A stretch of 64,000 bases of DNA from contig CM074805.1 of NCBI GenBank assembly GCA_037447605.1, positions 4,311,361-4,375,360 on the forward strand, given 5' to 3'. Shown piece after piece: positions 24,505 to 30,825 of this stretch (positions are counted from its first letter, which is position 1; each line of letters opens with the position of its first letter). The position numbers and the translations under genes were made by a program. The DNA is from Zygnema circumcarinatum SAG 698-1b (lineage: Eukaryota > Plantae > Zygnematophyceae). Below the pieces are notes generated by a model. It had not been told where the DNA came from. It searched no databases and saw only the letters and a list, made by a program, of their open reading frames with translations.

Positions 24505-27332
24505 ATGGCGAGCCCGCGAGGTGGAGTGGGAGGTATCCAAGGCAGGAGGAATCTGTATGCGGTGCTGCTCCTGTACGGTCTGCTGGCCCTGCAGGCAATG
24601 TGCGGAATGGCAGGCAGTAGATCCCAATCAGCGAAGGTGAATTTGTCGATAGTCTCTTATTGGATGTAACCTCCCTCTTTTTCTCTCTCTCTCTCTTCCC
24701 ACCCTTTCTCCTGCCTTTATTTTGTTCCCCACTTCCTACACTCATGTCATCCTTCTCTCTTGCCGTCTTTTCTCGATTTTTCCGCTTTTATTCAAAAGAG
24801 ATACAGAGAGAAATAGAACGGGAGAGGGGGTGAGGGGAGAAGAGGAGGGACAGGAACGGATGCGCAAAGGGGTGGGAGAGAGGAAAACTCTTTCCTTTGG
24901 AATAAAATGAGTAAGATTTGTTTGTTCAAGATGTGCAGAAGCCCCGGGATTCCAAGTCCAGCAGGACAACCGCAGACATTTTGAAAGCTGCCGACAGGGA
25001 GAAAAGGATTGCGGAGAGAGAAGCTGCTAGGCAAAAGCGCCTTTATGGAGGACCCAACTGGAAAAGAGAAAGTGAAAGAGAGTACAGTAGAGAATGGCCC
25101 GTCCTGGTGAGTGGCATCAACGCTGACAACCAGCTAAGGTCCATTAAGAAATGCGATGTTTCATGGTTGTTTCGCATCTAGCATTTCGCATTGTTTCTTG
25201 GATCGGAGAGACTCTTGTGGCTCGAGAAGGAGATTGCATTGACCTAATTCTTCTTCAGCCAGACCGGTACCTTTTTCCAAGCCCTAAAGCTCCGAACGTT
25301 CGACGAGAAAACCGCACATGCAAACATTGTCAGACATGGGGAAAAAACTTATTCCCTGCGAAGCAATACATTGCCCACCTCATTACTTTGCAATGTCCTT
25401 CCTTGCGATGTTTTTTTTGTTTCCTGAAATCATCCATTGCGTTTCCATGTTTGGTTTGGAGGCGTTGCTTTCTTGCCTTGTCAGCATGAGCAGCTTTAGG
25501 GTGTAGAAAGTCAAGGCGAGAGTTCTGAAAATATCCAACCCCTTGAAAGCTCTGAAATCTCCCAGAATATTCCAAAACCGTTAAATGTTTTCAAGCTCTC
25601 CTTAACCGTCGTCTGTAAAAATGGCTTCTGTTGTTTACCAGGACAAACAAGCTTGCCTGCCTGCAGGTCTACCCACAGCCGCTCTGATGCGAACAAAGGA
25701 GCTTGGGCCCCCCATTTCCCACATGGACAATTTGACTTCTCCAGAAAGCTACGCCCTTCTTGTGTATCCGCGGCACGGCCTTGGAAACTCCCTTCGAGGG
25801 TTCAAAAGTTCGTTCGTGTTTAGTTTGTTAACTGGGAGGAGGCTCGTTGTTTTCGAGGGCGGACCTCACTGGAAGGTGAGAAGTTTAAAGCTCCCGGATT
25901 CTGAAAAAATTTTAGGCCAGTTTTTCGGTAGTCGCATTTTAGAAATGGAGTGTTTCAGAGGCTCCTGAAATGGAGGTAAATGACGTACAGGTTTGGAGGC
26001 TTTGCTGAGTTGGCAGCATTTCGATTGACTGACATCCTTCCTTCTTCAGACTTGAGAAGGCATGATGCAAAAGAAGCTTGAGATAAGAAAGCGAAAGAAA
26101 GGTTTACAACACCTAGAAGCTGTTTGATTCCAGATGTTGAAAGATTCAACGAGCATATTCTTTCCCCTCTCCGTGCTCCGTCCAGGTCCTCCACATGCTC
26201 TGCAATGGGTTTTCCTGCACCCCGGATCTCATTATAGACAACAGGAACTCTACTCTCGAGAAGGCCTTGAAGAAAAGGCGACCCCCCAATCTTACGTCGG
26301 GCGAGGAGGTGAAGGATGTCCTTGAGAAGATGCACTCCAATGTTTCTGTAATGACAGTACACAGCGGAAGCCACTTTGACGATTGGTGGTGGGCCGAGGA
26401 TGCAAAAAGGACGTGTGTCTTGAAGTCGTTGAACTGTCATTCGCTTGCATGTGTCCGTTCAAGAGCCCTTCACTTCCTGATTGGAGCCGGCCCTTCTGAA
26501 AGGTTGGAGGGCGTGATAGAGGAGTTTATACAAGGGTCGAAGGCAGGGAAGGGGTTGGAAGCTGTCACGCCGGGCATGGGTCTCCTCTTGACTTTCGATA
26601 TCGCCTTTCACATTAGAACACTAACAAGGTGAATTCCCTTCCCCAGCCCCCTCTCCCTCCCTCTCCCCTCTCTCCCAAATGTTTGGCACATGGGCCATTC
26701 CTAATTTCTACAGGGACATTGCTGACCACGATTAATTCATTAACGGGAAGTCGTCTAAGTCATAATTCATGATGCCCCCTTGCAGGGAAGTCGAGGGGTT
26801 CAAGAAAGACAAAAACTGTTTGTTGAGTGAGGCGGCGTGCAAGGAGGAGATGGAGGAAAAAGAGAAGATAAATATGCTGACGGTTTTGAAGTCCAGCTTC
26901 TGGACGTGCCTAGGGATGTACTTAAAAAGCCTCAAGAAGGAGCTTGCCACCAAAAGGGACAGGAAACCGATCCCAAATATTTGGCTTGCAACCGACAGCG
27001 AGGCCTTACGGCCGGTATTTGCTAAACGGTTACAGAAGCATGGAGCCTGCTACTACTCGACGGGAGGAGTGACACACTCTTCCAAGAAAGGAGCGGAAGG
27101 GGCGCAACTCCCCACTCTAGCCGAGTTTTATCTTCTGAGCAGGGCGCGCTTTACAGTCGTAGTGAGCCCTCTCTGCCCTTTCTTGAGTTCCTTTGCAGCA
27201 GCTGCAACGGAATACGGAAACGGAACAGTGGCTTTTTTCGGACGAGAAAATGGGAAATGCCAACTTCATTTTCCAGATCTAGGCATAGACACTCCATTGA
27301 CTAAATTTGTGAGAGCATTCTCTGACGGGTGA
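24505..27332 (+). CDS. Type II membrane fucosyltransferase-like protein (GT37 xyloglucan FUT / GT23-like fold); 5 exons, about 507 aa
   Basis: join(24505..24636,24939..25106,25642..25875,26186..26628,26786..27332) = 1524 nt. N-terminal TM LYAVLLLYGLLAL; HGLGNSLRGFKSSFVFSLLTGRRLVV; IAFHIR; IWLATD; TLAEFYLLS..SSFA. These match the fucosyltransferase motif series. Substrate unknown. Confidence 0.7.
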
Positions 27333-27606
27333 TGTGCCGCACGCCGAGTCATCGTTGAAGGACTTCTCACCAAGCAGCCTATTGGATTGGATTGTAAACG
27401 GTGAAGTTTGGCCATGATGCAGTATGCCCAGAACAGCAAAATTCTAGTCCTAAACGAGCGGAGACATATGATGTGAACATGCCTCGCACCACGAGACACT
27501 TCCCAAAACTATCCAGGGCCTCACTCGAACCCCACTCTTCGAATTATTCAAGGGTTTCCGTGGAGGCAAAATCTAGATGGCTACAAAACGAAGCAGGTCC
27601 ACGGGC

Positions 27607-29738
27607 TTATGCAATAGTCACGCCGCAACCTGCTTCGAGCCGTTTCACGTTCATTCGACACCTCACGGGCTCTTTCGCGCACCACTCACTCTCAGCAACA
27701 GATTCCGCCGCATCTCGCCATTGCTGCAAAACCCAAATACGAAATAGAAGATACTTCAGTGAAGGAACACAATGGCTCAGACATTTAAAGGAAAATTCAA
27801 GGATAAATAGCCCCTAGAAAATTCCATGACAAACCGGACCAAACCGCACATCCAGAATCGCGTAATACTACTGTACAAGTTTACGTCCGGATTCGCGTAT
27901 TCAACGGCCTAAGCTCAATATTCATTCCAAAGATGATTTGCTTTAATGGGCGTTTCCTTGCCTTGCCAAAGTCAGATACACCTGCGCTCAAAAGCTCTTG
28001 TTTGCACTCTTCCAGGTTTTCGTCGAGATTGTAGCCGTAGCCTATGGCGTGGTATCCTCGTCCGGAATCGTAACTGCATGGGTGGGCTTGCTCGTATGCT
28101 TGAACAGCTTTCTGAGCTGCCGCCATACACTCCCTGGAGACTGGCACTATGGTCTTGCTATTGCAGCCCTGGGCGAGAGCTTCAATGCTTCTCCGGCAGC
28201 GCCATCCATTGCGGCGACACCACCGACTCCCCTTCAAGTTGCGAGCCGCCTCAACCCAATCCTGCAGGGCAAAGCAAGTTAATGAATTTATAATCTTCTG
28301 TACACAACTTGTGAAATGCGAACGGCAAATGTCACTAACCTCGATTGCAATCGCATGCATATTAGCTGTCAGAACAGTTGTTGCGATTGAAAGAGAGGCT
28401 GTGACTAACTTCCAGCAAAGCGGACTCAGAACCTACAGGAATTTTATCCTCACACTATAACAGCTGAAAGCATACACCTTATATAAAAGTGAAAGTCACT
28501 CCTGCAGCAAGACACTTGATAAGGCCGGCATCAGCATTTGTTACAACGGGTCCCACCTGAGTTTCTATACTCGGAAGGAAGGCCTTTCCCGCAGCATCCT
28601 GCAGCTCCTCCCCTAGGAAAAGGCTGAAATATATAGTCAGGATTGTCGCCTGCACATTGCAGCATAGCTGGCCGAGGTGAGGCACGTCCTTCTGAATGGC
28701 TCCGCAAGATCTGCGAACGCTGACGGCAGCCAGTTCGTCTATAGCGAGATCATCAAGGCACTGTACGCCACTGTATACCTGCAACCATAGACAATCAACT
28801 TGTTATTTGGCTGAATGTATCGGAGTCCTGTCGGTTAAAATTTCAAAATAGACGAGGCATGCGGTAACACAGACTGTAAACCTCGACCAATGGCTTGTCC
28901 TAGGAAGCTATGACGATGTGGTCATTCATGGAAGTAAATATTTTTTAAGCATGACACCCATGCCAGAACTTAATGCACTCAAACGTCGCTAGGATTTCAC
29001 ACGCTCAGAAATAACCCACATCAGTAAATTCAAGATGTCTCACCTGCGCAAAATCTTTGGAGACTTTGTCCAAGTCCTGGCTGATCTTCTCACGGTTTTT
29101 TTCCAAGTTGTAGCCGACGCCAACAGCTTTATAGCCCCGATTCGTAAGGTATGCACACCTGTGGCGTCCTTCACTCTGCTCAAGTCGGTTGAGTATCTGC
29201 AAGGAGCACTGCGTTCTCAAGCAACTTTCCTTCAGTACGCAGATTTCAAACGCCGATGAAACAGGTGGCACGGTGTCGGTCGAAAGAAAGTCATATTAAG
29301 AAGAATCAACTGAACAGTAACTTAAGGGCCTGGCTGCAATTCAACTGATTATTCTCTGCAAATGCCCTCAACAGCAAAACTTCTTCGCTCACTCAGTTGC
29401 AAGTTGCTTGGCCAGATTAATCTTCAAAATTTTGAACAGTTGGTTGTTCCAATTATAGAACTTCAGATACCTGGTGTATTTCACGCTTAGAATCCTCCCA
29501 CATACTAGCCAAAAGCTTGCAAGAACCATACCTTCTGGCAAACATTTACAATATTCCGAGCACGTTCAGAAGATTCCTTCTCTTTCGACATCTCAAAATT
29601 ATCAAGCATTCGAATTCCAATCTCCGGAACAGGATCCTGAGAGGCTACAGCAGCATGAGCTCTTTCCAAATGGCAACTGATGCGTGCAAGGAGCAGCAGA
29701 AAGCTCTGCAGGATCAGAATCAGTTGTAGCCCCGCCAT
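27607..29738 (-). CDS. Secreted protein with two tandem T4/phage-type lysozyme-like domains
   Basis: complement(join(27607..27723,27962..28261,28557..28778,29044..29208,29532..29738)) = 1011 nt, 336 aa, assuming a GC donor at 27961. Signal peptide. SEGRHRCAYLTNRGYKAVGVGYNL and YEQAHPCSYDSGRGYHAIGYGYNL align ungapped with T4L [35 protein letters not shown] and QWRDAAESVAESEW match T4L WDEAAVNLAKSRW. The middle of domain 2 is not found. Confidence 0.75.
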
Positions 29739-30825
29739 TTCCACAGCATGAAATTATTCAAAACACGCTTCCTAGCGGCAGCAGCTTCCTCCCCTCGCTG
29801 TTCAAGGGCTCCCAAAAGCGCTTCAGGAGCTCCAAAACAGATGCGCTCGGGCACAGATAAGCTCTCATACTCATAAACCGCCTCATAAGCATGGCGGAGA
29901 GGGAGAGGCGATGGAGGAGAGCATGCTGCAGGAGGTGGTGGCACGTGCGAGAGAGCTGCCGCCATGCCTTCGGCGTTACCTGCTTGGAGCATGCACGAAA
30001 GCCGCAATGGCTGCCAGGGGACCCTGTTCCATGTACTTACAGTCCCGTGCTCAAAACGGGAACGGCAACTGCAACAGCGACATGTCTCCGTTCCTTGGGC
30101 CATTCTATGTTCAAAACTACACTGGAGACTGTCAACGGGTACGTTACCACGTGTGCAGATCTGGAACTGGAGCAGTTCGTACATGGAGAGAGGCCGTAGG
30201 ATAACTGCCAGGCCGCCACGTGGCGGACAGAGGACAAGGGCACCGACAAAATGTGTCGGTTTGTGCGTAACATAGCCACGTAGCCGCAACCGCCTGCTGA
30301 CACGTGGACGAGTGTTTTGGAGCGCACGTGAAAAGGTCTGACAGGAATCGTAAAAGCCGTCCGATGAGGATCGTACGAAGAGAAAATGTCGACACGTGGA
30401 AAGTCTTCCCGCAGTCAACGGCGGCACGCAGGGGCAAACGACAAGCGCTGCTCCTCTTGCCAAATGAAGAAAAGGTACAATCTGTCGCACGAGATGCCAG
30501 CGTGGCGATACTATCGGCGATTTGCGATGTACCGTATTGAGAAGATCGTCTGCTGAGGGAGGAAGCATGTTCGTGACAAAGCCTCGGTTTCTGGTTCGGA
30601 AGCCGTCTGGTTTTTCGTACCGATAAAAAAAATATTTGGACGGTCAAGATTGAATTTTGGATAGCTATGATGACATGGCATTGGAAATAACCGTCGATAT
30701 TTCCGAGCGACATGCTCGGGGCTGGCTCGGGGCTGGCTCGGAAGGCTCACCTACTCTTGCAAGGCCGAAGCTGAAAAAAGGCGACAAAGCGAGCGCCGTC
30801 GAAATTTTTGAGCTTAGGAGATGGG

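Follow-up and report, generated by a model that had tools for sequence, protein, structure and literature searches.

A 64,000-nt stretch of the genome of the alga Zygnema circumcarinatum SAG 698-1b (contig CM074805.1, positions 4,311,361 to 4,375,360, forward strand; here called the window, with positions counted from its first letter) carries, at 29738..27607 on the minus strand, a gene that resembles the gene for phage T4 lysozyme. The locus raises two questions: that is, what kind of protein the gene encodes, and whether that protein can do what a T4-type lysozyme does. No other algae are as close to land plants as the zygnematophytes, and T4-type lysozymes are not known to be in use by land plants. 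An original prediction, made from the letters alone, read the gene as encoding a secreted double lysozyme with a rewired catalytic set, acquired horizontally, then furnished with introns and disulfides and duplicated internally. As judged from the sequence comparisons below, the gene belongs to a small streptophyte branch, as yet without a name, within a GH24 family of eukaryotes, and is the fastest-evolving member of that branch.

The five-exon model proposed for 29738..27607 is real, and the gene is nuclear and expressed. Contigs from public RNA runs were aligned to 27300-30000, with base ambiguity at the joints settled through the reading frame, and one contig of 1952 nt, from run X1, joins 27300-27723, 27962-28260, 28556-28776, 29042-29208, and 29532-29966, in exact agreement with the model, including its GC-AG last intron. 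The five exons (Table 1) give an open reading frame (ORF) of 336 codons; all four introns are phase 0, the first three being GT-AG and the last GC-AG. Two other studies supplied runs X2 and X3, whose contigs likewise show splicing of introns 1 and 2. Transcripts had been named as a check on the prediction, and spliced RNA contigs were found, so the gene is transcribed. Contigs of X2, X3, and X6 are unspliced across introns 3 and 4 (27300-28782), and in X2 and X6 the unspliced piece has a depth of 65-69 vs. 6-19 for the 5′ exons. The predicted product is 223 aa if intron 3 is retained and 324 aa if only intron 4 is retained. The unspliced contigs possibly come from pre-mRNA or from transcription of the opposite strand, or the two introns may be retained in a regulated way; assembled contigs cannot quantify isoforms.

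The 336-aa protein appears to be of the secreted type, to judge from the hydrophobic stretch MAGLQLILILQSFLLLLARISC at its N terminus, a leader whose Kyte-Doolittle mean reaches 2.75, in line with the signal peptide originally proposed. Of its 17 cysteines, 16 lie beyond the leader. No relatives were found for the linker of ~45 aa that follows the leader in exon 1. A Pfam scan of the exons singly gave no match, and a phmmer search of PDB with exon 4 alone placed T4 lysozyme at the top with a weak E value of 0.16, over T4 lysozyme residues 126-156 and 18-46. With exon 4 as the query, HMMER was run exhaustively over 1.84 billion representative proteins and returned just 14 matches, the best of which are hypothetical proteins of Closterium and Spirogloea together with transcript contigs, and the weaker of which are metagenomic proteins labelled GH24 lysozyme (the 'marine' group). 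The marine matches pass Pfam PF00959; the streptophyte relatives reach at best 17.1 bits, vs. a cut-off of 22.3. One of the 14 matches, P0009, is a 437-aa protein of GNGWTCQRGFKQLGDGCVAVQVPKNAEINVF repeats that aligns only to the NGWRC stretch of exon 4, and we rejected it from the family as an unrelated repeat protein.

Profiles carry the relationship to T4 lysozyme. A profile of the streptophyte and marine proteins matches T4 lysozyme residues 6-156 in PDB with an E value of 3.4e-11. Against a profile of PF00959-positive marine proteins alone, the spliced 336-aa protein reaches 152.8 bits (best of 2000 shuffles, 6.9); a profile of PF00959-positive proteins of the cysteine-free, bacterial type gives 84.9 bits (best of 2000 shuffles, 4.8). 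In the profile alignment, residues 65-239 correspond to positions 29-196: that is, to the complete domain 1. The closest relative, P0002, shares 36-41% identity with domain 1; its AlphaFold2 model has a predicted local distance difference test score (pLDDT) of 87.5 and matches T4 lysozyme in Foldseek with a probability of 1.00 and a target-normalised template-modelling (TM) score of 0.71-0.75 over 160 residues. The structural comparison with T4 lysozyme that had been proposed thus gives a match for a relative, but the window protein itself is covered through profile scores only. We conclude that domain 1 is, on profile evidence, a complete T4-lysozyme-type (GH24) domain, homologous to Pfam-positive GH24 proteins. 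Outside exon 3, domain 1 keeps 19 of 20 family-conserved columns; within exon 3, 5 of 13 are altered (Q to A, A to I, V to T, D to T, and G to L).

The family to which domain 1 belongs is defined by eight cysteine columns common to the streptophyte branch and the marine proteins. The streptophyte members come from Closterium, Spirogloea, the liverwort Calypogeia, and a few transcriptomes; the named marine members come from Noctiluca (A0A7S1FB58), another dinoflagellate, the haptophyte Prymnesium polylepis, and the choanoflagellate Acanthoeca spectabilis, and the marine group also takes in many proteins from metatranscriptomes. Domain 1 has cysteines in all eight columns (C70, C87, C131, C163, C164, C213, C220, and C231), behind a leader, and two additional cysteines in the protein keep the total even. 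In a maximum-likelihood tree, the eight-cysteine proteins form one clade (support 100/99), the streptophyte proteins and domain 1 form a clade within it (100/99), and domain 1 is sister to all remaining streptophyte members (98/93). The branch leading to domain 1 has a length of 2.08, vs. a median of 0.35, and is the longest in the family. Cysteine-free sequences, the nearest of which are bacterial, fall outside the eight-cysteine clade. The phylogeny that the original prediction had called for places domain 1 inside a eukaryotic clade, with bacterial relatives outside. The bacterial comparison was made through the cysteine-free matches and their contigs: two of these sequences sit in ordinary bacterial chromosomal neighbourhoods, and the nearest cysteine-free relatives carry leader-like sequences at their N termini.

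The distribution of the cysteines bears on the age of the family. Equivalent cysteines had been noticed in both repeats (before Tyr18, and in WC, RC, and GC), and they are real and family-wide. The further claim that disulfide cysteines were gained in this lineage fails: because the same cysteines occur in dinoflagellate, haptophyte, and choanoflagellate proteins, they are older than the streptophyte lineage. An old bacterial origin of the eukaryotic eight-cysteine clade by horizontal transfer is plausible, and a transfer from bacteria or phage, if any, would lie at or before the base of that clade. For the old horizontal acquisition originally proposed, the tree settles neither the direction nor the number of transfers, nor does it show how streptophytes and unrelated protists came to share the family. 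A phage collection searched with P0002 gave one weak match, a Pelagibacter phage lysozyme (26% identity, E 2e-3), and a direct phage origin was rejected on the weakness of this sole match. No paper describing the family was found in the literature on GH24 or phage-type lysozymes in algae, Zygnematophyceae, dinoflagellates, and haptophytes.

The liverwort member shows that the streptophyte branch extends into land plants. This protein, P0111 of Calypogeia fissa (locus L009, 6001-8707), is encoded by three exons on a 16-Mb contig. It was found in a word-based protein search with a trimmed alignment, which did better than the same search with alignment A2; the latter returned five proteins and missed P0003, P0005, and P0010, although all three were in the query. 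The window protein was never returned by word-based search, which reached its ceiling of 8000 candidates, and is probably absent from the collection searched. In the tree, the closest relatives of P0111 are P0002 and P0102, both from transcript contigs (100/96). The P0111 gene adjoins a PTR2 transporter gene, and in its product the leader is followed by a His-rich stretch, while Asp19-His20 takes the place of Lys19-Asp20 of T4 lysozyme.

The second question turns on the catalytic positions. In T4 lysozyme, Glu11 is the general acid, and Asp20 and Thr26 handle the attacking water (PMC5606550, PMC5674055). In the alignment, E82, T91, and A97 of domain 1 and E255, S264, and A270 of repeat 2 correspond to Glu11, Asp20, and Thr26, exactly as had been read from the sequence. 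The general acid is present in both repeats, and Glu also stands at this position in 8/9 streptophyte relatives, 17/17 marine proteins, and 6/6 cysteine-free proteins. Position 20 has neither Asp nor Cys in either repeat; it is Ser, His, or Leu in the streptophyte relatives and Asp in 17/17 marine and 6/6 cysteine-free proteins. Position 26 likewise has no Thr or Ser that could position water in either repeat; it is Ala or Gly in the streptophyte relatives and Thr in 17/17 marine and 5/6 cysteine-free proteins. Position 19 is Leu in domain 1, Asp in repeat 2, and Asp or Asn in all nine streptophyte relatives; it is varied, and never Asp, in the marine and cysteine-free proteins. Glu11 and Arg145 of T4 lysozyme pair as a salt bridge, and the Arg145 equivalent is Arg in domain 1, in repeat 2, in 7/9 streptophyte relatives, and in every marine (17/17) and cysteine-free (6/6) protein. 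The rewired catalytic set is real, but it is not special to this gene: in the aligned sequences, replacement at positions 20 and 26 is the state of the whole streptophyte branch (9/9 relatives).

Repeat 2 is, by alignment to the profile, a half domain produced by loss of the middle exon rather than a lysozyme domain, and the description of the protein as a double lysozyme has to be given up. Residues 246-283 match positions 35-72 and residues 298-333 match positions 155-190; repeat 2 thus retains the first ~50 and the last ~35 residues of the domain and is without ~82 profile positions (73-154), roughly T4 lysozyme residues 53-124. The missing part, ~74 aa with three of the eight family cysteines, takes in most of the C-lobe core as well as the inter-lobe helix, and corresponds exactly to what exon 3 encodes in repeat 1. 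A single 238-nt GC-AG intron (27961-27724) has as its ends both the donor after DFGK and the acceptor before QW, and it stands in place of two introns and the lost middle exon. Introns had been said to fall at the same positions in both repeats; the sites do match, but in repeat 2 they are the two ends of a single intron. Because all exons are phase 0, loss of the exon kept the reading frame. Searches with tblastn found no exon-3-like remnant in intron 4 or elsewhere in the window, and no second copy of the gene in the window. Five of the eight cysteine columns are occupied in repeat 2 (C243, C260, C313, C320, and C331), 19 of the 20 family-conserved columns still covered are kept, and EQ replaces EG following the glutamate. 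Lacking the core, repeat 2 cannot have the full T4 lysozyme fold and would form no cleft alone.

An internal duplication, as originally proposed, is supported by matches within the gene and by intron sites. The gene matches itself in tblastn searches of the window (N part, E 8.8e-8; C part, E 0.011), and an identity of about 37% between the two repeats marks the duplication as old. An intron site after D[FY]xx is common to both repeats here and to both repeats of a Closterium protein, and is absent in Calypogeia; at intron 2 the site reads D[FY]xx|[VL]Y. The intron site before DW/QW occurs only in the two repeats of this gene, which supports their origin by duplication; in Closterium and Calypogeia there is an intron ~18 codons upstream of that site. 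A clade of domain 1 and repeat 2 is neither rejected nor confirmed by the sequence tree (approximately unbiased test, p 0.25). The evidence supports a history in which the gene arose by internal duplication and the second unit then lost its middle exon. The Closterium protein (P0016 of NIES-67/68, loci L003/L004, 6001-8980; 397 aa) has two complete, nearly identical eight-cysteine domains that are each other's closest relatives (100/100); because its two domains group together, the Closterium duplication is independent. P0016 has introns within each domain and one between the domains, and the latter is absent from the window gene, in which the end of domain 1 and the start of repeat 2 lie together in exon 4 with no intron between them. 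At that junction, TIVPVSREC (28145-28160) resembles NIVNVCQKC (the end of exon 1, 29532-29552, and the start of exon 2). The duplicated unit may have begun upstream of what is now intron 1, an intron absent from repeat 2, though so weak a resemblance may be accidental.

Comparison with known systems shows what has been kept and what has changed. The gene product is like T4 lysozyme and the GH24 endolysins (PF00959) in homology, in the fold predicted from the model of P0002, in its Glu11 and Arg145 equivalents, and in its G-x-G-x-N-L hairpin and W..AA..W C-terminal helices. It is unlike T4 lysozyme in being eukaryotic, in having introns, a leader, eight cysteines, and a partial second repeat, and in the replacement of Asp20 and Thr26; and the streptophyte members, unlike PF00959 members, lie under the Pfam cut-off. 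The marine protist proteins have the same eight cysteine columns, leaders, and domain length as the streptophyte branch, and they keep the Glu/Asp/Thr triad, pass Pfam, and are annotated automatically as lysozyme (Noctiluca A0A7S1FB58, 'Lysozyme'), whereas the streptophyte branch has lost Asp20 and Thr26 and bears only hypothetical or unnamed annotations. A parallel by description is offered by the bivalve co-opted phage lysozyme (BCPL) genes, phage-type lysozyme genes that gained introns, duplicated repeatedly, and changed in structure within a eukaryotic genome, and for which an antibacterial role was proposed and activity shown experimentally (PMC5303276); the BCPL genes are a separate animal acquisition, nested among phage sequences. 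The Zygnema locus shows several kinds of remodelling in one gene, which duplicated internally, lost a phase-0 exon, has a GC-AG intron, and changed rapidly in sequence.

As to function, we lean, by a modest preponderance of the evidence, toward a secreted protein that binds peptidoglycan or another glycan or that acts as a weak Glu-only enzyme. The protein would leave the cell and engage bacterial peptidoglycan or a similar glycan; classical inverting T4-type muramidase action would be unlikely without the Asp20/Thr26 pair; and the half repeat would serve as an extra mini-module consisting of helix A, the beta lobe, and the C-terminal helices. We favour this reading because there is no base at position 20 or 26 and because further conserved residues in the cleft region are changed in domain 1, while repeat 2 would have no cleft at all. 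Cleavage with Glu alone has precedents in the GH23 goose-type lysozymes, the lytic transglycosylase of phage lambda, and AP3gp15 of a Burkholderia phage, which cleave peptidoglycan with a single Glu and no Asp partner (PMC5674055). These enzymes belong to other families with no detectable sequence relationship to the window protein, and the likeness is one of logic, not of descent. Several observations weigh against a binder or weak enzyme of this kind. The modelled fold comes from P0002, a relative only 36-41% identical to domain 1. The kept Glu and Arg may be structural, and hence are no proof of catalysis; they could equally mean that the protein is still an enzyme. The long domain 1 branch and the loss of 5/13 conserved exon-3 columns are compatible with decay, as is the retention of introns 3 and 4, which would truncate the protein, in contigs of three of the four runs.

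A possibility to be taken seriously, if with clearly less confidence, is that the streptophyte branch re-engineered its site to work with Glu by itself or with a replacement base (for example Asp19, or in relatives His20), that the protein is an enzyme active against bacteria, cleaving peptidoglycan as a muramidase or as a lytic transglycosylase does, and that its rapid change is that of a defence effector in an arms race. Conservation of Glu in domain 1, in repeat 2, and in 8/9 relatives spanning zygnematophytes and a liverwort fits such an enzyme, as do the Asp or Asn at position 19 in 9/9 relatives and the Asp there in repeat 2, and a leader and conserved cysteines suit an extracellular enzyme; the Glu-only enzymes (PMC5674055) and the antibacterial, phage-derived bivalve genes (PMC5303276) would be its models. 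However, the hairpin of domain 1 (L90, T91, A97) offers no candidate acid or base, family-invariant Gln, Asp, and Gly columns are changed in exon 3 of domain 1, and repeat 2 is without the core helices. If the streptophyte proteins are active, GH24 chemistry is broader than known; if they are inactive, an antibacterial enzyme was turned into a binder in a lineage that reached land among soil bacteria. The streptophyte branch appears to have been kept from zygnematophyte algae into liverworts. A bolder proposal, which we hold to be unlikely, is that the branch as a whole switched to sensing or binding peptidoglycan, or to new Glu-only chemistry, with repeat 2 becoming an autonomous, disulfide-held, glycan-binding mini-domain; were the binding switch true, this would be a natural case of a lysozyme remade as a tandem lectin-like protein, acting as receptor or effector on the surface of the alga.

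Decay is, in our estimate, unlikely: that is, the gene could be a paralogue that lost constraint after duplication and is transcribed to no useful protein. The longest branch in the family, the exon lost from repeat 2, the conserved columns lost from exon 3, and the retained introns with their 223-aa truncated product would all fit, but the ORF is intact over five exons with four splice sites used correctly, all eight structural cysteines are kept and the cysteine total is even with the two extra ones, and the 19/20 conserved columns kept in repeat 2 despite its age (~37% identity) argue for purifying selection after truncation. Contamination with DNA of bacteria or phage, or recent passage of the gene straight from phage to alga, would suit a fold that is mainly phage and bacterial and a best phage match to a Pelagibacter phage lysozyme, but has a negligible probability and is refuted by the splicing of four spliceosomal introns in RNA, the position of the gene inside a 64-kb eukaryotic contig, the weakness of that phage match (26% identity, E 2e-3), the tree, in which the nearest relatives are eukaryotic eight-cysteine proteins, and the intron site common with Closterium.

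The features of the gene are collected in Table 1.

Table 1. Features of the lysozyme-like gene in window positions (UTR, untranslated region)
Feature	Positions	Strand	Content	Basis
5′ UTR, minimum extent	29739..29966	-	ATG at 29738	X1 contig ends at 29966
Exon 1, aa 1-69	29532..29738	-	hydrophobic leader aa 1-22, ~45-aa linker	RNA contig, ORF
Intron 1, GT-AG, phase 0	29209..29531	-	323 nt	joint 29208/29532 in X1, X2, X3
Exon 2, aa 70-124	29044..29208	-	domain 1 helix A and beta-hairpin lobe; C70, C87	
Exon 2, catalytic codons	E82 29172-29170; T91 29145-29143; A97 29127-29125	-		
Intron 2, GT-AG, phase 0	28779..29043	-	265 nt	joint in X1, X2, X3
Exon 3, aa 125-198	28557..28778	-	domain 1 core helices; C131, C163-C164	
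Intron 3, GT-AG, phase 0	28262..28556	-	295 nt	spliced in X1; retained in X2, X3, X6 contigs
Exon 4, aa 199-298	27962..28261	-	domain 1 C-terminal helices, then repeat 2 N part	
Exon 4, domain 1 part		-	W200, AA, WC213, R219-C220, GC231	
Exon 4, repeat 2 part	E255 28093-28091	-	C243, E255, C260, S264, A270, GYGYNLD	
Intron 4, GC-AG, phase 0	27724..27961	-	238 nt; ends CT..GC on + strand	joint 27723/27962 in X1
Exon 5, aa 299-336 and stop	27607..27723	-	repeat 2 C part; QW..AA..WC313..R319-C320..GC331	
3′ UTR, extends below 27300	27300..27606	-		406 to 960 more contig bases below 27300

Two further ORFs adjoin the gene. An ATG-initiated ORF of 282 aa at 29720-30568 on the minus strand spans the region of the 5′ UTR, with an overlap of 18 nt at the start codon; its product is Pro/Arg/Ser-rich, and it is probably not coding. 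No Pfam match was found among the neighbouring ORFs, this one and the next included. An ORF of 187 aa on the plus strand, at 26769-27332, is seemingly the last exon of a convergent gene, and its end lies 275 bp from the stop codon of the lysozyme-like gene. RNA contigs continue from the lysozyme-like gene into this convergent ORF, and the 3′ ends of the two genes probably overlap tail to tail.

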